Origin: Trichosphaerium sp. ATCC 40318
Lineage: Eukaryota > Protista > Tubulinea
Reading direction: 5' to 3'
Assembly (NCBI GenBank): GCA_038496445.1
Contig: JALMLS010000531.1
Span: 1-64,000, forward strand
Length of the DNA: 64,000 nucleotides
Made by a program: the position numbers and the translations under genes. Below, piece by piece: positions 1,949 to 61,660 of the stretch (the first letter of the stretch is position 1; every line of letters begins with the position of its first letter). The notes under the pieces were generated by a model that was not told where the DNA came from, searched no databases, and was given only the letters and a program-made list of their open reading frames with translations.

Positions 1949-3148
1949 ATGAGCAAGAAAGCCCCTAAAGACACAAGAGCCCCTAGGGCGATTGACAACG
2001 ACGTCCTACGCGAAATTCTATATTGTCTTGCTGCTGATGCATCAACGATTATAAATATTGGTAGAGTTAACTGGCAATTGTACGTTTTTCTTTTTTAAAC
2101 GAATGTTATTGTGTTTATGTGTAAAAGACTCTCACTATACGTATTAACGACTGCTTACGCTATTTTAAGCAACGCAATAGCCAAAGAGAACCTGGTTTGG
2201 AAGCTTGTAGCCAAAAAACAGCTGCCACATCTGTATGGCGTTATAACGTCTCTAAAAGAGAATCAACGTAATCAAATGGAGTATAGAATTATTTTTAAAT
2301 GGAAAGAACTGCTTAAACAACTTTTTGATCACAGTGCAATGGCGTTGAAGAAAAAAATTGACAATGTCAATCTGAGAGGCCATACTGGAATACAACAAAG
2401 TGTTACAAGCGCGGATACTTTATCGTTGCTCAGCGGATGCGCTGAAGGCCTAGATTGGTTGGGAAGGGCTCGTCGAAATGTTGAAAACAATCCAAGGCTT
2501 AGCCAAGTTCCAGAAGTTCTTTTTTTGCTTAATACAGTTACCATGTTGGAGCACACTGAAAATGCATATCCATACGAGCAAAATACCTTACATTCATACT
2601 TCTTGGTATTCTTGGGATTAAACATGAAACCACAAGGCACGTGTTTCGAAGAGACTTTTTTTTTACGACTATCAAAACAAAACATAGCCCTTGGGTATAA
2701 CTGCACTCCCTCATGTTATATGTTCACACGGAGAGGTTTTAGTAGCCATTTGCAATAGTTAGGCCTAAAACCAAAACACACACGTTTATTTTCTACTTAC
2801 AATAGTCCAATAGAATATTGTTTCGATTTCGAGTATGGAGAGAATGACGTTGTTGGAACTCGTTTTAGAGGAACGTTATACACTGGATACCCATTTACTG
2901 GCGTTTTTTCGTCAAATAGAAAGAAGAATAATAGGGGTAGTTATGATTTAACATCAAACGCGTCTATACAAAATTTTATGGTTGACATGGGTATACCTTT
3001 ACCAATGGAAGGTATTATTAAAGAGTTTTTGTCAGAGTTGTTGATGAACAATAAATTTACTGAGGGCTGGGTGCGAGATTTTAAACGCACAGATCCTTCA
3101 AGAACTACTGTACAATGGTATGAAAATCATCTTGTGGATACTAACTAA
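1949..3148 (+). CDS. F-box-like protein with unknown C-terminal region (2-3 exons; frame uncertain at T-run 2656-2664)
   Basis: ATG 1949. Spliced N-terminus 'IDNDVLREILYCLAADASTIINIGRVNWQFNAIAKENLVWK' fits the F-box pattern. An open frame 2759-3148 follows a likely acceptor. Confidence 0.6.
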
Positions 3149-3489
3149 AATAAACAAATGATGCCTCTGGCTCTTGGGTCTGAATAAACATTTGTCAAGT
3201 AGCAACATAAAAACTAAAAATAGCAAATACAAAGTTCGAAAAAGTCAAAATAAACACTAAGCGTTCCTTTGCCTTATTCCTGTGCTTGCTGTGTGTGCTT
3301 TGGTAACTTCACTTCAAACTTTCTCGGGACTACAAGTACAAACAAACAAAGTCAAATATACTTTACTGTCAAATCGTCAAATTTCAAGTTTGAAAGTGTA
3401 TTTTCCGTCCTTACTCAATTAAGACATTATCTATCATTAATTTGTGAAAGTTGTACGATGCACCTTAGATAAAAAGAATACGTTTTTTG

Positions 3490-6400
3490 GTGTGACATTT
3501 AGTTTACGCCCGAACCAAAGCATGCAACGTACGCCAACAAAAAAAACGATTGAGTATAGATTGTTTTTTATCGATTTATTCGTTTCCTTGCGCAAACGCA
3601 AGTCCCCTGAAGTGCTCTAATGGCCCAAAAGGTTTTTCGCCAGAAGATGTGGCCAAGATGAGCAACGAAGCTGTTCTCCTTTACACACGTGTATACACCA
3701 CGTACAGCGTAACAGATGACGTGGAAGAGCTACGGAAAAACCTTGTTCAAGCCAAAGACTCAAATGTGATCATTCTTGACTTATTTTACGACAAATACCT
3801 TGAAGTTCTGGAAACTTTTGTTAAAAATGAGGCAGCTTTTAGTCAAATACCCGAGGAACGACCAAAACAATATTGTGTTCCTATCTTGGGGCTTTACTTT
3901 GGATGTGGTACAACATCTTTACACATATTAAATTATTAATTACGTGAATCTCATGTTACTGTAGGTAAGTCAACGTTTCTATGGCATTTTCAAGGAGCAA
4001 TTGCAAGCGGTCTTAAAGCTCACTTGGCAGTATGGTCGATGCAAACGTGTAATTTTACTGACTAAAATTAGAACAAAAAAAAAACCGAAGAACTACCTCT
4101 AGCGGACGAGATAGTAGCACTAGCTAATGAGATATTCGAAGGGGATTTTGTGTACATTGATGTGAGAGCTATGAAACCATACCGTCAAGCTGAATTCAAC
4201 AAAAAACTAGCCAACAAAATCATGGTGGAGAAGTTCTTCAATAAAATAAATAATGCACGTGGAACACGTACGCTCGACACTTCATAGCTCTGCAATAACA
4301 TTATTATGTTTTTCTTCCAGATTTGAAACAATCAGAAAGTATGACCTTCAAAGAGGCGTTGTTGGAATATCACAACAAAGTGGGTCACATGTATCCGCTA
4401 GTTTTTGGTTTAGATGAGATAAGTCCGACAAATAGATTTGTGGTGGATAGTGTATGGCTTACAAGTATATTCTTTTTACTCACTTTGAAGTTAGTTAAAA
4501 CCATTTGGTGACTTTATTGATTGGATGTGGGCAACTTTGTACAACGTTGCTGCAGAGCTTCATACCAAACGTAGAGTACATTTCGTGATGGCAGGACATA
4601 ACCCTATTTTCATGGATATTGGTACTAGTTCCTTTAAAGTTGTTTTTACTGCGACTTATTTGTTCCTACAGGTGGTGTAGAAGGTGATCACATTAAAGAA
4701 CCTGGTTGGAGGCTTTCTTCAGTGACAAACAGTAAACCCATTCTGTTAAATGTAAGCCATTTTCTTTTATTTAGCTGATTGCTTTTCTTGTTAACTGATT
4801 CCATAGAATTTCACACCCAAGTTTATGGAGAGAATCATTGATAAGGCAATTTCAAAATACAAACAACCAATTGAGTTTAAAGGAGATGCAAAGAAAATCT
4901 ATGCAAAGAAAATGGTTGACGTTTATGCAGGTCATCCTAGATATATACAGAACGCATTTCAGTAAGCTTTATAATGCTGTTTCTGTTCCTAATACCAAAA
5001 AGAGCATTACTTGATGAAGCCGAGAATTACAATTTTACAGAACAAAAGAAGCTGATTGTTACATTCAAGGATCTGAAACGGTATGTGGATTACCAATGTT
5101 AGTTGTTATACCTTTAGCTCATACTTGTTAAGTATATTGGACAGAGCATATTTGAAATCTACACAAACAGAGAGTAGAAAACAAGAAATACGGAATATAT
5201 TGGATCCAGACATGTTTGATGCAAAAGGATTCGATTCTGTGCTCTTAGCATTCACTAAAATTGCTATTGCTGCTCAGTATGGACTACCTATTGCAGCAGC
5301 AGCTTCTGTGGAAGAGGCTATGGATACAAAGTTTGCAATACATCCAGGGGAAGGTGACGGCAGCAGACACATCTATACTCTCAGAAAAATACTCTCAATA
5401 GTGCCAATGATGCTTATCCCAAAGACAGCAAAAACACAAAAAGGAGCAGGCGCCACATTCTATTATCCAAAGCTTCCCAAGCCTGTTATCGATTATGTTC
5501 ATAAACGCACCAACAATGTGAAACTTAAGCGTATGATGAAACAATGAAACGCTGATGAAAAAGGTAGGAGATTGTTTTATCGCCTTCCCTCAACCACTTC
5601 ACTCAAGGAGCAATTTTGGAGAAGTTATCCATAATAGGATTTGAAAAAAAAGTAGGACAAAGCCTTTCAGACATTATTCACTCTTTAAAGGGGACTAAAC
5701 TTGAGGTACGTTCTACCAATCTCTCATGTTTTATCAATTAACAATAAGTAGAACGTTATACTTCCCAAGGAGTTCACAGCATTTCCTAAAGTAACAAAGA
5801 ACGGAACACGCATCAACTGGCCTGATGTAACAGGGGAAACAGTACATGAGCTTCTAACAATTGTAAAAACTGATTTTGCAAACGCGTGGGACTTATATGA
5901 ATCTCCTTGCATGATAAATCCTCGCGATAAATCAGGTACACCAAAATCTCAACGTTTCATTTCATGCTCTAATGAATACAAATAGGTTCAATGGACTTTT
6001 ATTTCAAAGGATGTGTAATTAGCAACAAAGGCGAAAGTGATATGGAGTGTGAGGGCGAAGATATTGCTTGTAATATTGGCTGGAAAATGAAGGTATAGTT
6101 GTGAGTTTGGATTTATTAGTTGTATAATTCTTGTTTCAGGCAGAAAGACATGAAATGAAGTTTAGTACACTTGCTGCTGATATACCAAAATATCACGTGA
6201 AGAAATCCGATGCAACCATTGGTGTGATTATGTTTATATGCTTATTGAGGGGCCAAGAGATGATAAATTTTATTGGTGAGGAAACTATCATGCTTGGACG
6301 TGTAAAATGATTCTCTTAAATGCGCTAAAATCAATATTGTAGCTGGTGAGTACAGAAAGACTGGAAAGGTTCTTTTTAACTATACAACAAATACTATTAT

Positions 6401-8923
6401 CATTGGTGGTAAAAAGGTGCTCTCAATATACTTGTTACAGGTTTAACTCTGACTTCTAGATACACCTTGATGAAACTAAAGACGAAGAAGGGCCTAACAC
6501 TTTGAAAGTTGGTGAAAACATATCAAAAACATTTAAAGCTCTAAAGACATTAAGAGTCAGTGATGAACACGCTGAGGAAGTGTTTAGTGCTTGTAACAAA
6601 AAACGCCAGCTGGTGCTTCATAAAAGCCCTCCTAAAGATGCAGCCACAAAAGACTCTTTTATTGTAGACGTAGGGATAGATGTGTGTATCCTGAGTCTCA
6701 AAGCTATCAAAGCTTTATGTAATATGAATGATCGTCAAGTGGCAACCTATGGAAACAACGTTAACAAAGGTCTGTTCGGTCTTAATGAAGGCAAACTTAT
6801 AATGAATGGTACATAATTCTGCTTTTTTTCTTACCCTTTTGGTTTTCTTTCATTTTCTGCTTACGTTTGTACAATCAAGGTAACATTATGAAAGTACTTA
6901 ATATTAAACCAAAGACAAAGACAATCACGATTTACAACCGCTACAATAAAGAACAAAAGAAGAAAGTCATAGTACAAAAAAATGATATTCTACCAAATTT
7001 AAGTACGACACATACTACCTAATTATGTTTTTCTAACACCATCTAGTTAAAGAAAACTTTGGCGTAAAAACAATTCTGTTGGATGAAAACTCAAATCTTG
7101 TAGTGAGTTACAATGAACTTGAAGATGGAGGATTATACTGCTACAATGAACACTTGCAACCTGCAGATCCAAAGACAATCCATTTAAAGTACAATGGCCA
7201 AGTAAAAGATATTGTTCTAAATCAAATGTCCACTGGACAGCATCGGAGGTACCTTATTAATGAAACCTCTAAATGATGATCTAATCTAACAGATTCGTTT
7301 AGTTCCAAAACTATTTGAACTGGCTCTTGACATCAATCTTGTATTTAAAGATGCGAAGGGTGAAAGAGTTAGGCTCTTCAAAGATGTAGAAAACGATGGC
7401 ACATACACCATTGATGGTGTTAAAACTATAAAGCTGTTACATAGAGGCGCTACAACATCAATGGCTGTTGGACCAAATACAGAATTTTACACTGAAGGTA
7501 AAACTCTTAAAGCCATTTCTGACTAATAGGAGTTAAATACCAAACACAACTCATCGTTTAAATAGTTGCGGCACTGTTTGGAGTAGACCCAGATATAATA
7601 AAACTAAAATCCAGTGAAGGGAAAACAGTGTTTCACTATTCACAACTCATGGGTAATGCTACTTACAATATTGACGATGGCACAAGGACCGTCAATGTTG
7701 TGTTTAACGGAGAAACGAAATCCATAGATATTAGACATGGTACAAAAATGCCAAGATTGCTCAATCAAGGTACTGTCACTCTGTAATAGCAATTATCCCT
7801 TTTAACAGATTTGATAGTTGCAACGGTTTTTGGATTAGATTCAAGTAAAATTAGATTACTCGAAAATGGGAATGCAGTGTTCCATTATGCGCAATTACTG
7901 GATAATAACTCTTGTTCTGTTGTACTAACAAGAAACATAATCACGTTTATTTACAAAGATGTGCCAAAACAACTTGAAGTCGGTCCACAAACTGACTCAT
8001 ATTTTGAAGGTGCTGCACAACATATACTGTCTTTCTAACCTGTCGATTAGTAGCCCAATTGTTTGGGTTGAGCTATGATAGCATCAAAATTAGCGATATG
8101 TATGGAAACAAGCTTGCCAATACAGATGTTATGAATGCTAAGAGGTGTTTGGTAGAAGATGCCAATAGGAAAATTACACTCACATATAACGGTGCAATCA
8201 ATGACGCCAACACAAAAATTGATACAAGACACATAAATGTGACCTCAAATACAAACTTGTTGGATGAAGGTAAGCACGTTTATCAACAGTACAAGTCGCC
8301 ATCTAACCTCTGTTACAGTCCAAGCCTTGTTCAGTCTACGCAATACCCCAGTGATTAAAGATTTCACTGGCAGAGAGGTGTATACCTACGTGCAAGTAAA
8401 AGATGGCGGAGCATACAATGTAAAAAATACACCTATCAAAAAAAGAAAAGCAATCAGTTATCCTGAAGGAAGTAAGATTGTAGAAACAAAAGCAAGGACA
8501 CCACAAAGAACTCCGAATAGCAATCAAGAAGATTATTCAATGGCAGATGTCTCGACAGCCTCACCTCGTGGCCCATTTTCCTCACCTGTTCCAAGCCATC
8601 AAGCTACAAAGCGTAGATCTCCAAGACGAGAATACAAGCGGTCACCAAGCCGTGATCACAAGGATAGATACAGGCGATTGCCTAGACAGAAATGTAACAA
8701 CTACCGTACTCGCAATCGACGGTATGAAGACCAACACTACCACAGGCGTGACTACAATGACTACCGTGACAGGTACTCTCCAAGAGATCGTCAATATGAT
8801 CGTGATAGTTCAAGAAGACATGCAGATACACGCATAGAATACCGTAGAGGCGATACCACACGAAGGCAAAGAAAGAACAAAGATAGACGCAACCGAAGCA
8901 GGAGATACCGTGATATAAACTAG
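3490..8923 (+). pseudogene. Family A copy 1: Crinkler-like NTPase + restriction-fold nuclease + 6 Ubl-like repeats + basic RS/RD tail; disrupted
   Basis: Spliced PILGLYFGCG|KSTFL, PLVFGLDEIS, HFVMAGHNP, YAGHPRYI, NPRDKSG|SMDFY...IGWKMK. Compared with its inverted twin it has TCA>TGA at 5545-5547 and a 2-nt deletion at ~7233. The 5' end is approximate. Confidence 0.75.
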
Positions 8924-9089
8924 TTAATACACAAGAGTATTTTGCTTTGATTCATAATAAAGATATTTTTGAGGGAACATCAGTACGAGAAGAAGACGTT
9001 CAAAAGATGCAAAGCTGTGTTGTCTTGTACCGCTTATACCGCCCACCTGTCATGCTGTACAAAATGTTTCCATGACCTAGTGATGTTCT

Positions 9090-9390
9090 CGTGCTTGTTC
9101 AAGAAACAAAATTCGTGGAGCTCCAATTTTATTTCATTTATGGTATAAATTGTTGTTAAAGCCTTTAATACATTAAAGCCTTCCTTTTCTTATTGAGAAA
9201 TATTGTTGGGTACTGTCAACAACAAAGTCGAAACCTCTAATTGAGCTGATTCTGCTTAATAAACAAAGATGAAAAGTTATCCATTGTTAAGCCTCTAGCG
9301 TTCCAAATACCCTCCAACGGAGATCTCAACCGATGTGACATTCTCCCAGAAACATAGAAAACAGGCTATTGCGTAAGATGATGATACCAA
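9090..9390 (+). pseudogene. Degraded 3' fragment of the Ran-like gene
   Basis: 'agatgaaaagttatccattgttaagcctctagcgttccaaatacc' (~9268-9312) matches the reverse complement of the last exon of the gene at 13505-14386. A decayed copy of the preceding intron is retained and there are frameshifts. Confidence 0.75.
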
Positions 9391-9410
9391 AGCTAGATTA
9401 AGCTTCTATG

Positions 9411-9923
9411 TCAAACTTGGTTGGTATACGCCAGTTGACCATCTTTGTAAACACGATCAAAAATACAATCACCTGAAGATGTGTACTCTATTTTTTGTCC
9501 ATGTAGCTTGCCATTTACATAGTTACTAGTCTCAGATAATATACCATTACCATGCCACTCTACATAGAGTCCATCTAGTGCACCTTGTTTATAAGAACAA
9601 TTGATATACTTTTTTCCGTTAAAGTGCCAAGACATGTACTTTCCTTCCTTTACATCTTCATTAGCAAACCAGTTCATCCTCATAATACCTCCTCTATAGT
9701 ATTCTTTATACTCTCCGTCTATTTTTCCGTTCTTGAAACGGCATTGAATGTAGATTTTATCACGATCTTTAAAATATTTAATGAACTGTCCATTTTTATT
9801 CATTTCTAGGTTGTATCTTGTTGTTGTAGCTGTTTGAACGCATAATAGTGGGTATTTTAAATAAACTTCCTTAGATGTGCGCATAATCATATGCTGAAGC
9901 TCTAGTGGCAAATCAGTGATCAT
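9411..9923 (-). CDS. Intronless MORN-variant repeat protein with F-box-like N-terminus (170 aa)
   Basis: N-terminus 'MITDLPLELQHMIM'. Repeats of type 'YKxGxLDGxYxEWHxNG' (FKNGKIDGEYKEYYRGG, YKQGALDGLYVEWHGNG, YVNGKLHGQKIEYTSSG). Confidence 0.85.
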   Translation of the reverse strand: MITDLPLELQHMIMRTSKEVYLKYPLLCVQTATTTRYNLEMNKNGQFIKYFKDRDKIYIQCRFKNGKIDGEYKEYYRGGIMRMNWFANEDVKEGKYMSWHFNGKKYINCSYKQGALDGLYVEWHGNGILSETSNYVNGKLHGQKIEYTSSGDCIFDRVYKDGQLAYTNQV

Positions 9924-18315: not shown

Positions 18316-21300
18316 AGGCAAGAAACACCCAGAGTGTTGATCCAACACCAGGTGAGCAGAAAGTTATGCTACGTACGTTATTTTATCAAATTCAGTAATT
18401 ACACGCAACTATGCGCTTTCGCGAATCAATCATGTCTTTGAAAAAACTAATTCTGTGCAATACTAGGTTTCGATTCTGAGGAACTTGCGAAGTTGGATTC
18501 AAAGGGCATCAGAGATTTAGCCCGCATCCACACTACCTTTAATGTGAATGACGACCTGCCACAACTTCGAGCATGCCTAGAGGGCCAACATACCGAGAGT
18601 GTTATTATCCTGGATCTGTTTTATGACACTTATCTCGAGCTGTTGAAAACATTTGTAGGCAACACAATAAGCCTGAGTGAACCAAGCGGGCCTGGCCAAC
18701 AGGCACACCCAAAATCGTACTTCACCCCAATTTTGGGACTTTACTTCGGATGTGGTACTTATTATTACCTTGGTTGTTTGTATTATTTTTGAGTCTTAAG
18801 TTTCTTAGGCAAGACAACATTTTTGATGAATTTTCAAGTGGCTATTTCGACAGGCCTTTTACATTACATAGAAGAAGCTGGATTAAACCATTTTGATATA
18901 CCACCATTTAGTCAGGATCCAAAGAAGAATAAAGCTGCTGTAACAACGCTTGCAGAAAATATCCTCGAAGGAGACATGGTATTTATCGATGTGCGATTCA
19001 TCAAACCAATGTCTGATGCCAAATTCAATGAAGCGGAATGCAACAAAAAAGTTATTGAAAACTTTTTTGAGCAAATAAATAAAGCACGTGGATTAGGTAC
19101 AAAGCTTGAACTCACATTTATTCTCTCTAACACTGTGTAGACTTTGCCAAGTTTTTTGAAGAAATAAAAAATACAAGTGAATTAGGTACAAGAAAGTTGA
19201 ACTTATAAACATGTTCTAACACTTTGTAGGCTCAGATGATATTCCTAAAAAAATGGACACTTTAGAAAACGCAATAATATTCTATCACAACAACGTGGAA
19301 CACGATCTCCCACTTGTTGTTTGCATAGACGAGTTAAGCCCAACAAATAGATTCTCGACAGAATCGGTAAATTTTTTGTTTTTTTGGATTGAAGTTAACA
19401 AGTACCAGCTAAAAGGATTTGAACTTTTCGTGGGATGGATATGGGGATCTGTATACGATGCTGCATTTAAATTGAAAGGAGAGCGCGAAATACATTTCGT
19501 GATGGCCGGACACAACCCAATTTTCATGGACATTGGTGGGTTAGAAGACACCAACGAAGTTTCAACGTGGAGACGTGATTCGATTACAAAAAGTAAACCA
19601 CTTCTCCTAAACGTACATTTAGCAGATATTAAATGCTTTATGACTAACTTTACTAGACGTTTACACCAGAGTTTATGTGCAGAATTATTGATAAGGCAAT
19701 AAATGTGCATGACCAACCTATTCGCTTTGATGACGATGCAAAGGAAGAGTATACAAAGGCCATAGTTGATGATTATGCAGGTCATCCTAGATATATACAA
19801 AATATATTCAAGTAAGCTATTGGTAAAAGTCCTTGCGCTAATGTTGTACTCAGTGGAGAATTGGCTTTAGCGAGAGAGTATTTGCGTTGCCAAAAGTACA
19901 TTACAAACAGTTACCAGTGAAATTTATTGTTCTATTTTTAGGAAATGTAAGCATATCAAGCTAGAAGATGTAAAACAGTACGGATTAAACATAATTACTA
20001 GCTCACTCATAGTTTGATTTAAGAATGGTGGCAGAGGCGTGGAATAGGGCTACACACACAGATGACAGGGAAAGAGAAATAAACAATATCTTGGATCCAT
20101 GCATGTTCGATGCAGCAGGATATGACTCTGTGCTATTCGCGTTTGCTAAAATAGCCCTGGTTTCTCGCTATAATCTCCCTATAGCAGTAGGAGAAACTGT
20201 AGAAGAGGCCATGGCAACAAAGTTTCAAATTAACAAAAAGGAGACCACTAGTAGAACTATTTTTTCGCTCAAAAAGATACACTCAATTGTACCAATGATG
20301 CTCACACAAGAGAAAAAAGGAAAAGCAACATTCCTTTATCCGAAGCTCCCAGCTCCTGTGACAAAGTTTTTAAGCGATAACTGTTCAGAAAGCCAACTGA
20401 AAGATTGGTTGCAATTTGGGAAAAGTGCCGACAAAGGTACTTAGCCAGATTGGTTTATCTTAATATTGCTAGGAGCACTATTAGAGAGGATATCAAAACT
20501 TGGGTTCGGTGAGCACAAGGGCAAACAATTCTCAGACGTTATACCATCTTTAGCAGACACTAAATTGAAGGTAAGACCTTTAAATTGTTTTTCTACAACA
20601 TAACAACATATAGGGAGTTAACATTCCAACAATATGTAATTCGTTTCCTAAAGTGACCAGCGGAGCAGGACTTCTCAAGTCTGAAATTACCGAAAAACAA
20701 GCAAAAGAATTGCTACAAGCACACAGTACAGATTTTATGAAAATATGGAAGGTGTACTCACCTCCTTGCATGCTAAATCCTTGCTCAATGTCGAGTATGT
20801 GAAACGTTTCTACGTATACAGTTTATTAAACAATAAGCAGGTTCAATGGACTTTTATCTCAAGGGATGTACAATTGGAAATGCTGAAGGTACAACCGCAG
20901 TGTGCAATATCGGATGCCAAATGAAGGTAAATTGCTACGGATAAAACCTTAATTAATCTTTTTTGATATAGGCGGAACAAGATGGATTAATGTTTAATCA
21001 GATAGCCCGTGAGCTCAACAAGTATCATGTGGATACTTCTGATGCATCAATTAACGTGGTAATGTTTTTATGTGTTAAAATAGGCGCAGAGTTGACAGCA
21101 TGCCTTGGAGACACAACTGTTATGCTTGAACGTACGTACACATAGCTTTTAATTATTATTGTACGAAATTAACACAACAACAATGTAGCTGGAGAATACA
21201 GAAAAGTTCCTGGCAAAGCTCTGTTTAACGTTACTACGAATACAATTATCATTAATGGTAAAAAGGTATGCTGTACCCCATTGTCAACAAAATACTAATG

Positions 21301-23900
21301 CGCTATAACAGATAAAACTGTTTGAAGCACCTAGCAATAGTATTAAACCAGGGAATGTAATATCAGTGGAGTCAAAAGTAACAATATCCAAAGGTGATCA
21401 TGTGACCACCCCTATTAAGAAGCTAGCAGTGAGTGATAGAGATGCTGCGGAAGTACTTGCGATCTGTGATGGGCAAAAGCTTTTGCTGTATAAAAAAGCT
21501 ACTGCTTCATCGCCCAAAAAAGCTACTGCTTCATCGCCTAAAAAAGCTACTGCTTCATCGCCCAAAAAAGCTACTGCTTCATCGCCCAAAAAAGATACTG
21601 CTTCATCGCCCAAAAAAGCAGATCCACTTAAAAAAAAAAAAATTTGCACGGACTCATTCACAATACCTCCAGATATGGATGTTTGTGTGCTTTGTCTAAA
21701 AGACATCAAACTTTTATGCAATAAAAAGATCAATGAAAATTTCCAACAAGAAACATTCGGAAACAACTCTCAACTGAATGGTTATGGCTTGAACGAAGGT
21801 GCACTCATAATGAACAGTACGTAAAATTGATACAATGTATATTTTGTTAATACACGTCATTAGGTGACATTATGAGTTTCCTCAATCTTAAACCAAAGAC
21901 GAAAACCATAACACTGTTTAACATCCGTACCAAAGAACAATTTGAAGTAAGAACCCAACGTGGTGACAACTACAGCAAAATAAGTACAAAATGCGAAAAT
22001 ATTTTTTCTACAGCTTAATCTTGTTTTAGTTAAAGACGAGTGTGGTATAGCCACTCTTCTCTTTGATGACAAACACTGTGCCATACTAGAGTATGATAAA
22101 GTTAAAGAAGGCGGTAAATACTACTTTGATCCACAGCTATGCTGTGAACCCAAGTTAGTCCATTTACATTACAGGGGTAAAGTGGAAACTCTGCGTTTAG
22201 ATTTCGGATGCACTCTACATACTGCAGGCAATCTCTAGTATTATCAGCTTCCTTTTTTACTAATATCTTGCCAGTAAAAAACCTCTTTACACCAAAGTGG
22301 AAAAAAACAAGAGTGAACATTAAGATACATGACAAAGATGGAAAAATAATAAACGACTCTGATGTAGTTGATGGTGGTACCTACTACGTAGATGATGGCA
22401 TTCGAAAGATTAGCGTAGTTTTCAAAGGAGAAACTAAATGCACAAGTATTGGTCCATATACATTAATTCTTAATCATGGTACTGTAATATTTTACAACTA
22501 CTCCTCACAGATATGTAGTTGCAACCTTGTTCGGATTAGACTACGCTAAAATAGCCCTGCTATCCATGGACGGCACTAAAGTATATTATTACAAGGAATT
22601 GGTAGAAAACGACACTTACAAACTAGATGACGGCACAAGAGCTGTCAATGTTGTGTTTAAAGGAGAAACAAAATCCACAGATATTGGACCAGATACAAGA
22701 ATACCATATCAAGGTGCGTTAAGATCTCCCAAACAAGATAGATATTCTAACTGAAAGATAGTGGCTGGATTATTTGGACTAGATTCAAGTAAAATAAAAC
22801 TACAACTCGAAAATGGGAATGAAGTGGTCCACTATACACAAGTAGTGCATAACGACTCTTGTTTTGTTGTTCTAACGAAAAAGACAATCACGTTTATTTA
22901 CAAAGATACACCTAAACAACTTGAGATCAGTATACAATCTAGCTTGTATCTCGAAGGTACTTTGTGAATTTATACTTTCTCTAAAATGTCTTTTAGTTGC
23001 GGAATTATTTGGATTACAGCCTGATTGTATTACATTTAAAGACGAGTATGGACAAAAGGTTGTCAATAAAGACCTGATGACAAAGGATATATGCATTGTG
23101 GGTGATGCCATTAAAAAAATTACAGTCACTTACCAATATCCAAAAAAAGAACTTATAACAAAACACCTAAACATCACCACCGATACAAACTTGGTGGACG
23201 AAGGTACGAAGTTTCTTGGCAGCAAAACAAGTTTGATGTTGACATTATTCTTTTAGCCAAAGCTTTGTTCGGCTTGCAAGATGCTCCAGTGATTAAAGAT
23301 TTTACTGGCAGGGATGTGTATACCTACGCACAAGTAAAAGATGGCGGAGCATACCATGTAAAAGACACGTATCCGCAAGAGCTAGATAGTATGTACCATG
23401 AAAAAAAAAAAGCTACCAACAAAAGAAAAGCAACCAGTGATCATGAAGGACTTGTTGAAAAAAGACGTAAAACAACTTCCAGGTCTGATAATCAATCTCC
23501 AGAATACAAACGCAAGAAATCACCAAGCAATGATGATTACAGAAGCGGATACAAACAACCTACTAGACGTAAAGATAGTAGCAGGCGGCGTAATAATGAT
23601 AACAAGTATCACGATTATCACGATAGTCATGAAGATCGACAGTATCGCAACCGTCATAACAATGATAACAAGTACCACGACTATCATGATAAGTACTCTC
23701 AAACTGACCGTCGATATGATGGTGACTCTTCAAGAAGACACACAGATGCACGACGAAGAGACTTACCAAAACACCATCATTACGATCGTGATTCTCAAAA
23801 ACGCTGGGATAGGCGCACTGACCACCGAAGAGAAGGCACACGGAGTAGACAGCGAACAGATAAAGATGATTGGCACTCTAAAAAACGAAGCATGAGATAA
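18316..23900 (+). CDS. Family A copy 2: NTPase + restriction-fold nuclease + SPKK repeat insert + 6 Ubl-like repeats + basic tail; start uncertain
   Basis: PILGLYFGCG|KTTFL, PLVVCIDELS, HFVMAGHNP, YAGHPRYI, NPCSMSS|SMDFY...IGCQMK. Exon structure matches the other copies. Tail ORF 23265-23900. Confidence 0.78.
21492..21620 (+). repeat. Coding 24-bp minisatellite, ~5.4 units, encoding (KKATASSP)n
   Basis: aaaaaagctactgcttcatcgccc repeated, translated KKATASSP x4 + KKDTASSP + KKA. Absent from copies 1, 3 and 4. Confidence 0.95.
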
Positions 23901-24604: not shown

Positions 24605-25007
24605 AACGATTAAATACCAAGCTGGTCTTTTTTAAAAGTAACAACATCTGCAGGCGATTACCGTCGTGCATGTTTCTAAGCAAACCCATGAACAGCTAAA
24701 GAAGAGATTTGAACTTATTGTTCATTTTCTTCTCACTAGTGGCCACCTTACTCAAACAGGATATAAGGTACGTAAATTACGTGACTCAGGTTATCGGAGT
24801 GAATACACGATGACTTGGAAAAAAGAAGGGTAAAGTGCTCCTGAATTAGTTAGGTTAAATACGAGTTGGCGAGTTGGTAATTTCATAAGCTTGTTTCAAT
24901 CGTTTTAGAGCTTCAACAAGAATTTACAACAATACTTTCGGGTTGTTTGTATTAATGTACAGGATGCGAGATGAAGGGTGGTTTATTTACCAGTGGTTAC
25001 AACATTC

Positions 25008-26430
25008 TTAAACTTGTTCCCAGAATGAACCTGCACATAATGGGTCTAACATACATTCTGGAGTGTTGTAGCAGAAGTTTGAGCAAGTACGGGCAACACA
25101 ATTTGAAGCAAAGATACATGGGTTATGCCATGCGAGTCGGAAGCATCTTCTTTGGCTACGACATCTTTGTTGAACAGGTTTTGTTGGAGGTTGTACTGGT
25201 TCCGTTGGCGGATCAGTTTGTCCTTGAACAATGATTGTAGAAACAGTCGGAGGGTTACAAAAGGCTTTAGTTCCTTGTCTGTACAATAAAAGTTAGAGAT
25301 TGTTTGTGAGATTTCTTGATAAGAAATTGAATAGTTAAAAGGAGTTCTCTTGCGTACATGTCATCACCTTCATTTGATCGAATTGGAGGATTTTCATTTG
25401 CACCTGTTGTGACACTTGCAGCCAAGTCATCAACTTGACCAGGAGCAATCATTTCTATTGTGACAGTACATGATGCTTCATCTGTCTCATCGAGAGTGCC
25501 AGTGAAATCAAGATTATTGTTTACAACACCTGATGATGTGGTGCCTGTACATGTTGGCTGACTCATTGTACCAATTGATGCATCAAATCCAAATGATGCA
25601 GCGATATCTTGAGTTGCAGATGGGATTGCCTCATAGTTTCTACAAATCACAGAAACCTCAATTTCATCACCAACATTCAAGTCATCGATGTTGGCATTTC
25701 CAAGAGGACTTATGGTGTGCCTAAAATACACGTGTTAGTATAAATGGCGTAAAACGACGAAAAAACAAAGATCGTACCAACATGATACAACTGGTTGACT
25801 GCAAATGTACAATATGTTGCTGTCAGTATTAGGAACCAATGAAACGATGTCATGTTGTACGAGATCAACAGAAGATAAATCACCATTGAACGGTATACAA
25901 ACATCCATGGAGTCTACGTCACTGGCCAGTACAGTTGAGATAACTGTATTCTGAGATGATACTGAATCTCTCAGCGTGGATGAAAGTTCAATATTGTTAT
26001 CAGCTGCTTGTACGTGAAAGTTCCAACAAGCTAAACGAGTGTTAGATAACATCAGCGAGGAGGAAAAAAAAGATGTAGGATATGACGTACTTTGTCCATT
26101 TTGAACCAAGTTTACAGGAGAAAACCCATTACCACTTGTGCCTTTGTAAGCAAGTGATACTGTCCCTAGTATTGTAACATCGTTTGATAGAGAAAAGAAG
26201 CCAGCTACAACTGTTGATGACGCTTCTAGGGCATCTGAAGAACCAGGTTGTCTCGTTACTGTCATCTCACGCTGTCCACCAATAACAGAAGCATCAGTGA
26301 TTGTATTACTGCCAACAAGGTTGGTTCCATTTGCCGATGCTGTTTGAAACGCTGTAAACGGATCAAGAAGAAGACTGGATGTTGTTGCGATAAACGATAT
26401 ACCAACAAGTAAAATAAGGAAGCGTTGCAT
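25008..26430 (-). CDS. Family B copy 1: secreted protein (signal peptide, variable beta-rich domain, DUF11/Ig-like domain, Pro/Thr linker, Cys-rich C-terminus); 4 exons
   Basis: Signal-like MQRFLILLVGISFIATTSS. Exon 3 'VGDEIEVSVICRN...ATQDI...GTLDETDEASCTVTI' resembles DUF11-type Ig repeats. The last exon carries 8 Cys. Three paralogues share the exon structure. Confidence 0.8.
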
Positions 26431-27500: not shown

Positions 27501-28739
27501 TAAACGTATCATTTCACTTTTTGTCGTCATATGCACAATGTCAGAAAATAATCTCCACAAGATTTTTGACAACTTCCCACCTTTCACAGAAACCTTGGCA
27601 AAACCAAAAAGCCAGACATTTTGTCTAATAGCAAGTATTTTTGACAACGTGTAAATTTCGTAAGTACGCAAAAGGCCAGTTTCAAGTTGTTTTATTTTGT
27701 AAGGCACGTTGTAGATTTGCTTTGTACGGGGGAATAAACTATCCAAGTTTCGTTACAAAATCTGGGACACCAGGTTTTATCTATGACGTTACACAAGTTG
27801 TACAAATAGCGTCACATTTATCCCATAAACAATTTGGTACATTATTATCGTGTAGTTTAAGCAAAGATCACGTGTCATCAAACAGAATGCCTGCAATATT
27901 TCTGTGAAAACATCATTTTAACTGTGTAAACATTGTGCAGCTGGCACAGGTAATGGTTTGTTGAATACGGTTTCATAGTTAGCATTACAAATTACCAAAA
28001 TTATACAACCCAACAGGTTTTCTAGCGAAGTTTGTAACGCATACTCAAATGGTTACACTTTTAAACACTTTGTTACAATCAGGAACTAAGTTTCTCGTAT
28101 TATCAAGAAACAATTATTTGTTCAAAGGCATTTGTTAGTGTTCGTGTGTTGCTATTAATGCGAACAGGAGATAAGGAAGTACAAGTTTTCAAGTATTTGT
28201 ATAAAATATGGCCTGAAAGAGCCTTTTGTCGCATATCATTACACTCTACTTGGGTAAGGTAAATCGGAAGTTCCTTTAAAATGTAGCTATAAACTATAAA
28301 AAACAGATTTCTCGTTTTGCCTGAGTGTACAGTTTTGACGCTTCCTTCTTTGCTTAAGTTGTATCATTTCTCGCAACTACATCCAATCTTCTTTTTGATC
28401 CATGTACAACGTTTGAAGCAGCAGCAAATGGAATCAATCCTTGTAGCTGACTATAAAATTCTGGTTGTTGAGAACGTAGATGATTATACCGTCTGTTCAA
28501 ATGGCGTAAATTTCGTCAATGCTTGTGCTTGTATTGATGGGCGTTATGTCGGTCCTTTACCACTTAAACCTTTTTTATCTTACAAGCTCTTTCTGCTAAT
28601 ATACTGATCAAATAATAAATTCAAGGACTGTTGAATAGTTTTACAAGACCTCTCCAAAAGAAGTATATACGGTGAACATTTTAAAAGAGTACACGATGCG
28701 AGATGAAGGGTGGTTTATTTACCAGTGGTTACAACATTC

Positions 28740-30149
28740 TTAAACTTGTTCCCAGAATGAACCTGCACATAATGGTTCTAACATACATTCTGGAGTGTTG
28801 AAACAGAAGTTTGAGCAAACACGACCAACACAATTTGAAGCAAAAATACATGGGTTTTGTTGTGATAGTCGGAAGCATCTTCTTTGAGTTCTACATCTTT
28901 GTTGAACAGGTCTTGTTGGAGGGTCAGTTTGTCCTTGAACAATGATTGTAGAAACAGTCGGAGGGTTACAAAAGGCTGCAGTTCCTTGTCTGTACAATAA
29001 AAAATAGTTAGAGGTTATTTGTTGTCAAAAAAAAAGGATGAGTTCTGTTGCGTACATGTTGCTTCCTTCATTTGATCGAATTGGAGGATTTTCATTTGCA
29101 CCTGTTGTGATACTTGCAGCCAAGTCATCAACTTGACCAGGAGCGATCATTTCTATTATGACAGTACATGATGCTTCATCTGTCTCATCGAGAGTGCCAG
29201 TGAAATCAAGATTATTGTTTACAACACCTGATGATGTGGTGCCTGTACACGTTGGCTGACTCATTGTACCAATTGACGCATCAAATCCAAATGATGCGGT
29301 GATATCCTGAGTTGCAGATGGGATTGCCTCATAGTTTCTACAAATCACAGAAACCTCAATTTCATCACCAACATTCAAGTCATCAATATTGGCATTTCCA
29401 AGAGGACTTATTGTGTGCCTAAAATAATACAATCACGTGTTAGTATAAATAGCGTACAAATACATTTGGTAAAACGTCTAAATGAATAAACAAAGAGGAT
29501 CGTACCAACATGATACAACTGGTTGACTGCAAATGTACAATGCGTTGCTGTCAGTGTTAGGAACCGAAGCAAGAATATCATATTGAACAAGATCAACAGA
29601 AGATAAATCACCATTGAACGGAACACAAACATCTATAGCTGCGTTAATATCTGTTGCCATCAGTACGGAAGTAGTTGTATTTTGTGATGATACTGAGTCT
29701 CTCAATGTGGCTGAATAAGTAACACCAGAGTTTGTTTCAACAACTCGAAAGTTCCAACAAGCTAAAGATGAGTTAGGCATGTGAGTAGTAAAAAACAATA
29801 ATAGTGTACTTTGTCCGTTTTGAACCAAGTTTACAGGAGAAAACCCATTGCCACTTACACCTGGATAAACCACTGATGCTGATCCTTGTACGCTTGCGTC
29901 GTTCGACACACCGAAGATGCCACCAAAGATAGTCGCTGTTGATCTCAAGGCGTTTGGAGGTCCAGGTACTCTTGTCACTGTCATGTCACGTCTACCGCCA
30001 ACAACAGAGGTATCAGTGATTGTATCAGTTACAACAGGGTTGTCTTCATTAGCTCTTACAGTTTGAAGTGCTGTAAACGGATCAATAAGAAGACTGGATG
30101 TGGTTGCGATAAATGATACAGCAACAAGTAGTAGAAGGAAGCGTTGCAT
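28740..30149 (-). CDS. Family B copy 2: secreted protein; direct repeat of copy 1
   Basis: ATG 30149 (MQRFLLLLVAVSFIATTSS). Exons 3-4 are nearly identical to copy 1; exons 1-2 are strongly diverged. Confidence 0.8.
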
Positions 30150-34621: not shown

Positions 34622-34674
34622 GGGTGGTTTATTTACCAGTGGTTACAACATTCTTAAACTTGTTCCCAGAATGA
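34622..34674 (-). repeat. 53-bp exact fragment of the family B 3' end at the large inverted-repeat breakpoint
   Basis: gggtggtttatttaccagtggttacaacattcttaaacttgttcccagaatga equals 24976-25028 and is the reverse complement of 33431-33483. Confidence 0.93.
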
Positions 34675-35753: not shown

Positions 35754-38700
35754 CTAGTTTATATTATCACGGTATCTCCTGCTTCGGTTGCGTCTATCTT
35801 TGTTCTTTCGTTGCCTTCGTGTGGTATCGCCTCTACGGTATTCTATGCGTGTATCTGCATGTCTTCTTGAACTATCACGATCATATTGACGATCTCTTGG
35901 AGAGTACTTGTCACGGTAGTCATTGTAGTCATCACGCCGTCGATTGCGAGTACGGTAGTTGTTATAGTTCTGTCTAGGCAATCGCCTGTATCTATCCTTG
36001 TGATCACGGCTAGGTGACCGCTTGTATTCTCGTCTTGGAGATCTATGCTTTGTAGCTTGATGGGTTGGAACAGGTGAGGAAAATGGGCCACGAGGTGAGG
36101 CTGTCGAGACATCTGCCATTGAATAGTCTTCTTGATTGCTATTCGGAGTTCTTTGCGGTGTCCTTGATTTTTTTTCTACAATCTTACTTCCTTCAGGATA
36201 CCTGATTGCTTTTCTTTTTTTGATAGATGTATTTTTTGCGTTGTATGCTCCGCCATCTTTTACTTGCACGTAGGTATACACCTCCCTGCCAGTGAAATCT
36301 TTAATCACTGGGGTATTGTGTAGACTGAACAAGGCTTGGACTGTAACAGAGGTTAGATGGCGACTTGTACTGTTGATAAACGTGCTTACCTTCATCCAAC
36401 AAGTTTGTATTTGAGGTCACATTTATGTGTCTCGTATCAATTTTTGTGTTGGCGTCATTGATTGCACCGTTATATGTGAGTGTAATTTTCTTATTGGCAT
36501 CTTCTACCAAACACCTCTTAGCATTCATAATATCTGTATTGGCAAGCTTGTTTCCATACATATCGCTAATTTTGATGCTATCATAGCTCAACCCAAACAA
36601 TTGGGCTACTAATCGATAGGTTAGAAAGACAGTATATGTTGTGCAGCACCTTCAAAATATGAGTCAGTTTGTGGACCGACTTCAAGTTGTTTTGGCACAT
36701 CTTTGTAAATAAACGTAATTATGTTTCTTGTTAGTACAACAGAACAAGAGTTATTATCCAGTAATTGCGCATAGTGGAACACTGCATTCCCATTTTCGAG
36801 TAATCTAATTTTACTTGAATCTAATCCAAAAACCGTTGCAACTATCAAATCTGTTAAAAGGGATAATTGCTATTACAGAGTGACAGTACCTTGATTGAGC
36901 AATCTTGGCATTCTTGTACCATGTCTAATATCTATGAATTTCGTTTCTCCGTTAAACACAACATTGACGGTCCTTGTGCCGTCGTCAATATTGTAAGTAG
37001 CATTACCCATGAGTTGTGAATAGTGAAACACTGTTGTCCCTTCACTGGATTTTAGTTTTATTATATCTGGGTCTACTCCAAACAGTGCCGCAACTATTTA
37101 AACGATGAGTTGTGTTTGGTATTTAACTCCTATTAGTCAGAAATGGCTTTAAAGAGTGTTACCTTCAGTGTATAATTCTGTATTTGGTCCAACAGCCATT
37201 GATGTTGTAGCGCCTCTATGTAACAGCTTTATAGTTTTAACACCATCAATGGTGTATGTGCCATCGTTTTCTACATCTTTGAAGAGCCTAACTCTTTCAC
37301 CCTTCGCATCTTTAAATACAAGATTGATGTCAAGAGGCAGTTCAAATAGTTTTGGAACTATACAAATCTGTTAGATTAGATCATCATTTAGAGGTTTCAT
37401 TAATAAGGGTACCTCCGATGCTGTCCAGAGTGGACATTTGATTTAGAACAATATCTTTTACTTGGCCATTGTACTTTAAATGGATTGTCTTTGGATCTGC
37501 AGGTTGCAAGTGTTCATTGTAGCAGTATAATCCTCCATCTTCAAGTTCATTGTAACTCACTACAAGATTTGAGTTTTCATCCAACAGAATTGTTTTTACG
37601 CCAAAGTTTTCTTTAACTAGATGGTGTTAGAAAAACATAATTAGGTAGTATGTGTCGTACTTAAATTTGGTAGAATATCATTTTTTTGTACTATGACTTT
37701 CTTCTTTTGTTCTTTATTGTAGCGGTTGTAAATCGTGATTGTCTTTGTCTTTGGTTTAAGATTAAGTACTTTCATAATGTTACCTTGATTGTACAAACGT
37801 AAGCAGAAAATGAAAGAAAACCAAAAGGGGTAAGAAAAAAAGCAGAATTATGTACCATTCATTATAAGCTTGCCTTCGTTAAGACCGAACAGACTATCGC
37901 CTTCATTAACGTTGTTTCCATAGGTTGCCACTTGACGATCATTCATATTACATACAGCTTTGATAGCTTTGAGACTCAGGATACACACATCTATCCCTAC
38001 GTCTATAATAAAAGAGTCTTTTGTGGCTGCATCTTTAGGAGGGCTTTTATGAAGCACCAGCTGGCGTTTTTTGTTACAAGCACTAAACACTTCCTCAGCG
38101 TGTTCATCACTGACTCTTAATGTCTTTAGAGCTTTAAATGTTTTTGATATGTTTTCACCAACTTTCACAGTGTTAGGCCCTTCTTCGACTTTAGTTTCAT
38201 CAAGGTGTATCTAGAAGTCAGAGTTAAGCCTATAACAGGTATAGTGAGAGCACCTTTTTACCACCAATGATAATAGTATTTGTTGTATAGTTAAAAAGAG
38301 CCTTGCCAGTCTTTCTGTACTCACCAGCTACAATATTGATTAGTGCAATTAAGAGAATCATTTTACACGTACGTCCAAGCATGATAGTTTCCTCACCAAT
38401 AAAATTTATCATCTCTTGGCCCCTCAATAAGCATATAAACATAATCACATCAATGGTTGCATCGGATTTCTTCACGTGATATTTTGGTATATCAGCAGCA
38501 AGTGTACTAAACTTCATTTCATGTTTTTCTGCCTGAAACAAGAATTATACAACTAGTAAATCCAAACTCACAACTATACCTTCATTTTCCAGCCAATATT
38601 ACAAGCAATATCTTCGCCCTCACACTCCATATCACTTTCGCCTTTGTTGCTAATTACACATCCTTTGAAATAAAAGTCCATTGAACCTATTCATTGAGCA

Positions 38701-58900: not shown

Positions 58901-61660
58901 CTGAATTTGATCGTGTTCATGTGTTTAAATAGAAGCAAAAATATGATAAACTGTATAGGCAAGGAAACTATTATGCTTGAGCGTACGTAATTCACATTCT
59001 CTTTACATTGCTAATAATGTTGCAGCTGGTGTTTACCGAAGAACTGGAAAGGGACAGGCTCTTTTTAACAGTACAACAAACACTCTTATCGTGGATGGTA
59101 AAAAGGTACTCATACTACAACCTTAGCTATGAAGGTAACGCTGTACCTAGATACAACTGCACGAGCCAAAGTCTAAAGTACCGATCAACAGAACTGTTTA
59201 TGTTGGAGACACTGTTCAGATTAAAAAACAGAAACACAAGATATTGAGAGTAAGCGACGCGGACGCTGAGACAGTGTACAAGGCTTGTAATACAAACCAA
59301 CAGCTTGTGCTTGTAGCAAGCACCTCAGAAACTACCAAAAAACCAATGAAGGCTTCGTTTACGATAGCCGACAAAATGAATGTATGTGTACTGAGTGAAA
59401 ACGATATCAAAGCTGTATGCTATGCGAATGATGTACAAGTTCTACAATTTGGAAACAACGTTAGAGAAGGTGATGATTTGATTGGTCTTAATGAAGGAAA
59501 ACTTATTATGAATGGCACGTGATTTATTTTGAAATATGTCTGTTTTCTTTCTCGGAAACCACTTTTTTTTTACATTTTACCATCTAGGCGACATTATGAG
59601 AGTCCTTAATATTAAACCAAAGACAAAGACAATCACGATTTACAACCGCTACAATAAAGAACAAAAGAAGAAACTAAAAATACAAAAAAAAGATGTTCTA
59701 CCAAATTTAAGTATGACACATGTATAATTACTTCCACGTGTTTACACTTTATTTAGTCAACGAAATTTTTGGAGTAAAAACTATTCTCTTGGATGCGAAA
59801 TCTAATCATATAGCAAGTTACAATGAGGTTAAAGATGAAGGGTCATACTATTACGATGAACACATTCAAGCTGCAGATCCAAAGACAATCCATTTAAAGT
59901 ACAATGGCCAAGTAAAAGATATTGTTCTAAATCAAATGTCCACTCTGGACAGCATCGGAGGTACCTCTTTACTGATAAACCTTAGCACTCCTAAACGTTG
60001 CTTCCTAACCTGCTTCTAAATAGTGTCACGTTTATTTGAATTACCTATTGCCAATCTTATATTCAAAAACAAGAAGGGTGAAAGAGTTAGGCTCTTCAAA
60101 GATGTAGAAAACGATGGCACATACACCATTGATGGTGTTAAAACTATAAAGCTGTTACATAGAGGCGCTACAACATCAATGGCTGTTGGACCAAATACAG
60201 ACTTATACACTGAAGGTACAACTCTTAAAGCCATTTCTGACTAATAGGAGTTAAATACCAAACACAACTCATCGTTTAAATAGTTGCGGCACTGTTTGGA
60301 GTAGACCCAGATAAAATAAAACTAAAATCCGCTGAAGGGACAACAGTGTTTCACTATTCACAACTCATGGGTAATGCTACTTACAATATTGACGATGGCA
60401 CAAGAACCATCAATGTTGTGTTTAAAGGAGAAACGAAATCCATAGATATTGGACCAGATACAAAAATGATAAATCAACGTACAGTCTATCTTTAAACCCT
60501 AATAACAGATTGTTAGTTGCCGTGGTATTTGGATTAGATTCAAATAAAATCAAAGTAAAACTTGAAAACGGGAATGAAGTGGTCCACTATACACAATTAG
60601 TTGATAATGCCACCTGCTATGTTGTATTAACTAGAAAGGTGATCACATTTATTTATGGAGGCACATCAAAACAACATGAGATCGGTATAAACACTGATCT
60701 GCATTTTGAAGGTACCGCAACTATTATCACTCCCGGACACTGAGTACCTTTTCTCACGTGTTTGTTTAGTTGCAAAATTATTTGGGGTCAATTCCGATTG
60801 TATTGCAATTCAGGATAAGTATGGAAACAAGCTTGGAAATGAAGACGTTATGAATGTTGATAAGTGCTTGGTGAAAGACGCCATTAAAAATATTAAACTC
60901 ATCTATAAACGCATTGTCAATCACTCAGAAAAAGAGCTTTTAACTAAATACCTAAATGTGACTACAACTACGAAATTGTTGCAAGAAGGTACAACGTGAT
61001 ATAAATAATACCAAAACGCTTTAACTAACGCTTCAAACTCGGTTAGTGCAAGCCTTGTTCAGTTTAGACAACGCCCCAACAATCTCAGACTTTACTGGAC
61101 AATCTATACATTTCTATTCACAAATAAGACATGGCGGTTTATACCATGTCAAAGACAATACTTCTGCTGTGAAGAAAAGAAGAGCAACCAGTGATCCAGA
61201 AGCAAGTATGAGTGTTGAGAAAAAAGCAAGAAAACCAACGCCGAGAATCTCTGACAATCAAGAGTATTCAATGAGCGATGCTTTACCCAACTCACCTCAT
61301 AAACATTCTCGATATGGAACCAAGAGTTCACCAATACGTGACTATCGCCCATCACCAAAGCGTGATGAATATTACAATGACAGGCGATCACAAAGACGTA
61401 AATATAGCTACAATTCCCGTGATAGATATGAAGATCAATATCACCGCAAACGTCGTGATAGCAACAGTCGATATGATAATGACTCTACAAAAAGATATGT
61501 AGACTCACGAACAAGCTATAGAAAAGATGACTACACACGCAGGCAACAAGAAATCAGGTACAGGCAACGAGATGATAGGCAACAAAAGGACTGGAAAACA
61601 ACCAGCGGGCAGAGCACAAAAGAGGATAAATACAGCTATAGAGGACAAAGACGTAGGTAA
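55932..61660 (+). CDS. Family A copy 4: NTPase + restriction-fold nuclease + 6 Ubl-like repeats + basic tail
   Basis: Probable ATG 55932. PIFGLYFGCG|KSTFL, PLLFGLDEIS, FAGHPRFI, KG|ALFEKL, NPRKES|SSMDFY...IGWQMK, TLAAEIPKY. Tail ORF 61046-61660. Confidence 0.8.

Follow-up and report, generated by a model that had tools for sequence, protein, structure and literature searches.

A probable array of ubiquitin-superfold domains, expanded together with an internal phase-1 intron, in a multi-copy gene of the protist Trichosphaerium sp. ATCC 40318

The window analysed here, 64,000 nucleotides (nt) of contig JALMLS010000531.1 (assembly GCA_038496445.1) of Trichosphaerium sp. ATCC 40318, is eukaryotic DNA of about 37% G+C with very short introns, and it contains one large multi-exon gene four times, as revealed by blastn of positions 3001-9600 against the window (copies A to D; Table 1). 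Copies A and C form an inverted duplication, 96% identical over at least 6.6 kilobases (kb) and about 25 kb apart. Our subject is the C-terminal part of this gene, which in copy A occupies 6880-8430, opening with the first base of exon E1 and closing where the last repeat ends within exon E7, and in which each repeat of about 65 amino acids is interrupted, at one common position, by a phase-1 intron (i1-i6). Introns were mapped by combining reading frames, a four-way DNA alignment and a scan for frame-keeping GT/GC..AG pairs; each copy has seven of them (i0-i6, 38-73 nt), which fall in the same alignment columns in A, B, C and D.

The first-pass annotation of this DNA had described six phase-1 introns at the same repeat position in all four copies. 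The intron map agrees with it on the cut motif, ..LxxE/G|V(A)xLFGL.. for i1-i6, and, in copies B, C and D, on the phase; in copy A, i2 is in phase 1 only after a deletion. In that copy 2 bp are missing from exon E2 near 7232 (the four-way alignment has TCCA--CTGG where C and D have TCCACTCTGG), so that the array read from its start leaves the frame and meets a stop in E3. Copy A is most likely dead or affected by a sequence error. The internal exons measure 120/198/204/195/195/207 nt in copy B, 123/204/195/204/192/219 nt in copy C and 123/204/192/195/195/219 nt in copy D, each length being divisible by 3. The further claim that any exon could be skipped or duplicated without loss of frame thus stands for these three copies and fails for copy A, whose E2 has 202 nt. 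Likewise, a phase-1 intron lies on each side of every internal exon of B, C, D and a longer paralogue, C94, the exception being E2 of copy A. GC replaces GT as donor in i2 of copy B (22228) and i0 of copy D (59515) and, altogether, in 4 of the 36 array introns examined, 14 of which carry a CTRAY branch-point motif near the 3' end (motif count). Among the paralogues, three introns are in frame and free of stops: L021:8675-8725 (51 nt), L021:6704-6745 (42 nt) and L022:6417-6458 (42 nt). The first of these has a GC donor, and its retention would add 17 residues in the helix region with the frame kept.

The register of the repeats with respect to the exons follows from the two ends of the array. 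Alignment of 15 internal exons defines an exon unit of 64 columns that starts with A-x-L-F-G-L and ends with L-x-x-E, with ..Y..DDG followed by K-x-I-x-x-x-Y-x-G-x-T-K in its middle. In every paralogue, E1 carries the first-half domain motif only, and E7 opens with the second-half motif only before continuing into an Arg/Asp/Ser/Tyr-rich tail, so that a whole number of domains is obtained only if a domain is taken as the last part of an exon joined to the first part of the exon after it. Together with the intron map and the model presented below, this upholds the earlier view that each internal exon encodes the second half of one repeat and the first half of the following one. Successive units meet in junctions such as ..Y.(L/V)DDG-IK.., ..IDG-VK.. 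and ..VVLT-RK.., and the domains are only about 20% identical to each other. A terminal Gly-Gly (..RGG), sought at the unit junctions, was found in none of the repeats, which are therefore not cleavable or conjugatable ubiquitin-like modifiers. An alignment in domain register, for which half-exons served as references, came out of MAFFT misaligned and was set aside.

Table 1. Gene copies in the window, repeat arrays of copies B, C and D, and exon-intron map of the array in copy A (positions are those of the window)
Feature	Position	Strand	Length (nt)	Description
Gene copy A	3001-9600	+		blastn
Gene copy B	about 18600-23900	+		blastn
Gene copy C	41666-35066	-		96% identical to A; blastn
Gene copy D	about 56400-61660	+		blastn
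Array of copy A, intron i0	6809..6879	+	71	phase 1; between upstream exon ending ..GLNEGKLIMN(G) and E1
Exon E1	6880..7002	+	123	short lead-in, then repeat 1 first half (strand 1, strand 2, helix start)
Intron i1	7003..7046	+	44	phase 1
Exon E2	7047..7248	+	202	204 nt in C and D; repeat 1 second half and repeat 2 first half
Intron i2	7249..7302	+	54	phase 1 only in the frame downstream of the 2-bp deletion
Exon E3	7303..7497	+	195	repeat 2 second half and repeat 3 first half
Intron i3	7498..7565	+	68	phase 1; nearly identical in A/C and D; within gene-conversion tract
Exon E4	7566..7769	+	204	repeat 3 second half and repeat 4 first half
Intron i4	7770..7817	+	48	phase 1
Exon E5	7818..8009	+	192	repeat 4 second half and repeat 5 first half
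Intron i5	8010..8050	+	41	phase 1
Exon E6	8051..8269	+	219	repeat 5 second half and repeat 6 first half, with longer hairpin loop
Intron i6	8270..8318	+	49	phase 1
Last exon E7	8319..8923	+		repeat 6 second half (to about 8430), KKRK-containing Arg/Asp/Ser/Tyr-rich tail, stop codon
Array of copy B	21864..23368	+		E1 to end of repeat 6; intron starts 21817, 21984, 22228 (GC donor), 22479, 22714, 22957, 23204; phase 1 throughout
Array of copy C	36229..37783	-		intact near-twin of A; intron starts 37855, 37660, 37412, 37162, 36889, 36649, 36389; phase 1 throughout
Array of copy D	59588..61158	+		intron starts 59515 (GC donor), 59711, 59961, 60216, 60479, 60712, 60989; phase 1 throughout

We searched for relatives of the repeat with single exons, exon-unit profiles or natural stop-free read-through open reading frames (ORFs). 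A Pfam scan of the exons (E<=1) returned no ubiquitin-like family, scanning exon by exon being a procedure that halves each domain and lowers sensitivity. The profile of 15 exon units had nothing below E 0.2 among the PDB sequences, a word search with the last exon and its tail gave no match, and the ESM Atlas gave no usable one. Only weak matches came from a profile search of 1.84 billion representative sequences, and we read them as compositional or repeat noise and not as homologues; six of them, scanned against Pfam, were bacterial Ig-like, cadherin-like or leucine-rich repeat (LRR) proteins, or showed scattered sub-threshold matches. The repeat family is thus without sequence relatives in very large databases and belongs to an undescribed gene family.

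Structure prediction was more informative at the level of the fold. We modelled a natural ORF of the close paralogue on C132 (L022:6296-6661), which shares 79-93% identity with copies C and D in E1 and E2 and whose i1, 42 nt long, is in frame and stop-free, so that its translation comprises E1, 14 intron-coded residues and E2. The AlphaFold model (me56a312b703e), computed from an alignment of E1 and exon-unit sequences, has a mean predicted local distance difference test score (pLDDT) of 65, with 60 residues at 70-90. It contains a domain with strands at residues 12-19 and 25-32, a short helix (33-35), short strands (65-66 and 72), a helical turn (76-78) and a strand at 84-87, interrupted by a low-confidence stretch (37-61) that includes the intron-coded part and a helix (53-59). 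On E2, the elements of the next domain follow, namely strands 97-103 and 106-112 and the start of a helix (118-121). The best PDB matches found by Foldseek were mostly ubiquitin, linear di-ubiquitin, ISG15, NEDD8 and Hub1, with some FERM-domain proteins (talin, kindlin); they had E values from 5e-3 to 9e-2, probabilities mostly of 0.8-1.0 and template-modelling (TM) scores of 0.53-0.65 on single ubiquitin-size chains, and a re-alignment gave Z 5.7-6.9 and a root-mean-square deviation (rmsd) mostly of 2.1-2.9 Å over 60-79 residues. In an independent comparison with 48,161 representative chains, the top 50 were all beta-grasp domains (doublecortin, CIDE, ELMO RBD, ubiquitin-like, SUMO), with Z 5.0-6.7 and rmsd mostly of 2-4 Å over 61-80 residues. 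These top-50 alignments cover roughly model residues 1-105, and mostly 11-91, which correspond to the end of E1 and the first half of E2.

The topology (strand-strand-helix-strand-strand-strand) and the superposition over the whole domain therefore argue, with medium strength, for membership of the beta-grasp superfold. The label 'Ubl-like' that the repeats had been given is accordingly favoured at the fold level by a medium-confidence model, while neither Pfam nor the PDB sequences lend it support. In the same way, the intron that had been placed in a predicted helix does lie between strands 2 and 3, in the connection that carries the helix, its position within the helix itself being suggested by the motif and the model. 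Comparing the predicted structure with the exon borders had been proposed as a check, and in this medium-confidence model the two do not coincide: the modelled domain (residues 11-91) runs across i1, the rest of E2 starts the next domain, and exons and domains are offset by about half a domain. An exon that equals one complete autonomous domain, as in a class 1-1 module, is thus not found here.

The opposite assignment makes each exon a structural unit of its own, with a circularly permuted fold between VAxLFGL and LxxE, and treats E1 and E7 as leftover half-units, so that there would be no offset at all. It draws on the good conservation of the 64-column block and on the fact that periodicity alone cannot fix a register. 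We find it scarcely credible. A complete ubiquitin or doublecortin domain aligns to residues 11-91, across the boundary of E1 and E2; in every paralogue a first-half exon opens the array and a second-half exon closes it, giving whole domains in the domain register only; and strand 5 is separated from the next strand 1 by about 3-4 residues (DDG-IK), which, reasoning from the geometry of ubiquitin, is too short for a permuted beta-grasp. In addition, the model of two exon units obtained from a C94 read-through ORF (L021:8479-8913) was poor, its pLDDT of 45 making it usable only for local secondary structure.

The same exon-domain layout recurs elsewhere in the genome. The exon-unit profile has 44 matches in the 70.3-Mb assembly, all in one register, with the same profile start and end positions, and this shared intron position implies common descent of the repeats rather than chance. 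Repeat number across paralogues, another check that had been proposed, does vary with the intron position unchanged: there are 3 domains in the paralogue on C103, 4 on C98, 6 in the four window copies (on C45) and on C132, and 11 on C94. The array exons of C94 measure 207/198/192/195/201/198/195/195/192 nt, with phase 1 throughout and two GC donors. The arrays thus show the pattern of tandem expansion by duplicated exon-plus-intron units: one intron position and one phase in every unit, with a unit number that differs among paralogues. The eleven-domain paralogue occurs twice, on C94 (74750-76891) and C430 (13923-14835), with equal match scores and identical translations of repeat 1 (122 residues); either an uncollapsed haplotype or a duplication of very recent date probably accounts for this pair.

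In a tree of 39 exon units, the units of A, B, C, D and C132 fall into groups according to their place in the array (E2, E3, E4, E5 and E6, with B_E3 and B_E4 left without clear placement), whereas the C94 units cluster within their own gene, as do E3 and E4 of C98. The grouping by position implies that the six-repeat array is older than these five paralogues and has kept its order and number, and that other lineages have gained or lost units; repeat order and number are accordingly invariant in these five six-repeat paralogues, and number differs in C103, C98 and C94. Between intact copies, the ratio of non-synonymous to synonymous substitution rates (dN/dS) takes values of 0.36-0.47 over the array and of 0.25-0.38 over the N-terminal part, by a rough Nei-Gojobori estimate on colinear blastp segments that include some out-of-frame ORFs in near-identical stretches, so that the values are approximate. 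As far as these sequence comparisons indicate, the array is under purifying selection, with nothing pointing to diversifying selection.

Superimposed on this old order are traces of gene conversion and recent duplication. Copies C and D are about 100% identical in three stretches (E1, the 3' half of E2, and a segment that begins in mid-E3, includes i3 and takes in most of E4) and 40-80% identical elsewhere; the conversion tract from mid-E3 through i3 into E4, in which A and C are about 100% identical to D, occupies 7334-7633 in copy A and 60052-60351 in copy D. A further conversion tract (8369-8409 of copy A against copy B) lies in part of E7, where copies C and B are 93-95% identical. The conversion tracts start and stop inside exons and cross intron i3, which implies that exons are not the swapped units. 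In C98, E3 and E4 are recent duplicates, with similar upstream introns and about 90-100% identity along some 155 nt of exon sequence; the similar tract takes in the upstream intron and reaches about exon nt 155, in neither the exon nor the domain register. A search for duplication breakpoints in C94 showed a mosaic pattern, in which the two halves of one exon have different nearest relatives.

Such turnover could be taken as adaptive germline diversity, generated by gain and loss of units and by gene conversion among clustered paralogues, as in fast-evolving defence families. The spread of 3, 4, 6 and 11 domains, the recent C98 duplicate, the clustering of ten C94 units, the patchwork of C-D and C-B conversion and the presence of clustered multi-copy genes with one dead copy all speak in its favour. 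We nevertheless hold this explanation to be rather unlikely. Five paralogues have exactly six repeats in the same order, dN/dS stays below 0.5, neither the conversion tracts nor the C98 tract respects exon borders, so that the exon is not the unit of exchange, and tandem-repeat proteins in general often differ in repeat number (PMC3995336).

Diversity might alternatively be produced at the RNA level, by regulated skipping or repetition of exons that would yield isoforms with fewer and with hybrid ubiquitin-fold domains, and this we consider very unlikely. In its favour, skipping an internal exon keeps the frame in B, C and D, the two helix halves flanking the intron (LxxE | VAxLFGL) are the most conserved motifs, so that a hybrid helix would join cleanly, and four of the 36 introns have GC donors. 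Frame preservation, however, is forced by the repeat structure and hence uninformative, and the introns are only 38-73 nt long. Where a genome has introns this short, it is usually the intron that the splicing machinery recognises, and whole exons are seldom skipped. The position-specific sequence of each repeat has moreover been kept across paralogues under purifying selection, and no transcript-derived member of the family appeared in the library of 1.84 billion representatives, in the word search or in a scan of metagenome contigs for cDNA-like contigs.

The first-pass annotation had suggested a combinatorial diversity similar to that of immune receptors. The fixed repeat order, the purifying selection (dN/dS 0.36-0.47), the absence of any alternative exon cluster and the disregard of conversion for exon borders speak against it. 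We likewise give very little credence to the broader idea that the half-domain, phase-1 design is exploited, by regulated skipping or rapid germline exchange, to make hybrid domains with retuned binding specificity, so that this family of clustered, multi-copy genes with NTPase-like motifs would serve as a protist conflict or defence system.

We think it highly probable instead that the C-terminal part of this multi-copy gene is a tandem array of six domains of about 65-75 amino acids with the ubiquitin (beta-grasp) superfold, expanded together with an internal intron. In the scenario that we favour, an ancestral single domain would already have held a phase-1 intron in the strand 2-strand 3 connection with the helix, an ancestral intron that we infer from the present layout, and tandem genomic duplication followed by unequal crossing-over would have multiplied a unit of about 245 nt, made up of a single exon and a single intron. 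The duplicated unit would thus be a cyclic permutation of the domain: an internal exon would encode the end of the helix and strands 3, 4 and 5 of domain n, and then strand 1, strand 2 and the start of the helix of domain n+1, while the array would open with a first-half exon, E1, and close with a second-half exon, E7. Duplicating a one-intron domain in tandem automatically produces exons of equal phase, of the length of one domain and divisible by 3. As phase symmetry and divisibility are forced by this origin, they are no evidence of function or design. The array introns would most likely be ordinary short introns, constitutively removed, and the array most likely serves protein-protein contacts through six non-conjugatable ubiquitin-fold modules in fixed succession. 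Judged by eye, the exons upstream of the array seem to encode a Walker A-like motif (GKST) and a Walker B-like motif (LDE), and the KKRK sequence and Arg/Ser/Asp/Tyr-rich composition of the tail suggest a nuclear protein.

Several points weigh against this interpretation. The structural model is of only medium confidence, and its Z scores remain below 8, a range in which common arrangements of secondary structure can match; it represents, furthermore, a read-through ORF with 14 extra intron-coded residues rather than the spliced domain. The constitutive removal of the introns is an assumption, and both the GC donors and the few introns that are in frame and stop-free would allow some retention or alternative use. 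The binding role, finally, is purely inferred.

Seen against known systems, the array resembles polyubiquitin, ISG15, FAT10 and linear di-ubiquitin in its head-to-tail beta-grasp domains with very short linkers, and differs from them in having no detectable sequence similarity and no Gly-Gly, and in forming the C-terminus of a large protein with nucleoside triphosphatase (NTPase)-like motifs. The highest structural Z scores (6.0-6.9, with rmsd mostly of 2.1-2.9 Å and up to 4.4 Å over 63-79 residues) were obtained with doublecortin (DCX), CIDE-N and ELMO RBD, over the whole domain, and DCX domains are tandem too; these Z values, however, lie within 1 unit of those of ubiquitin-like domains, with no sequence match and no demonstrated functional link.

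Exon borders inside repeats have been described in human JAG1, where one exon encodes parts of two neighbouring EGF domains (PMC2725086). Whereas two atypical EGF repeats are concerned in JAG1, here a whole array of 3-11 units shows a regular half-domain offset and uniform phase 1. In the class 1-1 shuffling modules of animal extracellular proteins (Patthy's rule), a symmetric phase-1 exon corresponds to a complete domain, which is what makes shuffling work. The array shares with such modules the symmetric phase-1 exons, which make insertion, loss and duplication frame-neutral (context in PMC3632108), but its exons never equal a domain and there is no sign of units moving between unrelated genes. 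Closer still is the expansion of repeats by exon-plus-intron units, described in passages of PMC3995336 that cite Street et al. 2006 and Bjorklund et al. 2006/2010: a genomic exon-plus-intron block is the unit, its number differs among paralogues, and we see no difference in principle. As to immune-type combinatorial systems, the array shares with them the formal possibility of in-frame mixing of repeat-encoding pieces only. Such systems include the alternative exon clusters of Dscam and the cassette assembly of lamprey VLR, whereas here there are no alternative exon clusters, donor cassettes, somatic machinery or isoform evidence, and repeat order is fixed under purifying selection.

Two of the array genes have genes of the ubiquitin system as neighbours. 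Exons of a HECT-domain ubiquitin ligase lie directly upstream of copy A (290-1209, +; Pfam HECT, E 6e-19 and 6e-8), and an F-box/LRR gene follows the paralogue on C132 (L022:9145-9798); the proximity of such genes to genes with ubiquitin-fold arrays may be a coincidence. Other repeats are present in the window as well. Upstream of its array, copy B has an exon (21309-21821, +) in which the peptide KKATASSP is repeated in tandem about five times, a feature not seen in A, C or D. Downstream of copy A there is an inverted match of 176 nt with 82% identity (9164-9336, + and 13742-13575, -). A second, unrelated repeat family occupies 24951-26386 and 28683-30105, about 3.7 kb apart and 74-95% identical, with a third match of 78 nt at 34597-34674 (families D4, D7, D8, D13, D14 and D20).

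The locus calls for caution in reading gene structure, since a repeat array whose exons have symmetric phase offers no evidence of combinatorial splicing. It is also of value for annotation, as gene finders and domain callers that proceed exon by exon will miss the fold. More generally, it adds an undescribed protist gene family to the known cases of this evolutionary pattern and offers a clean case of how an intron-bearing domain becomes an array, with a fixed half-domain offset, a uniform phase, 3 to 11 units in one genome and visible gene conversion.

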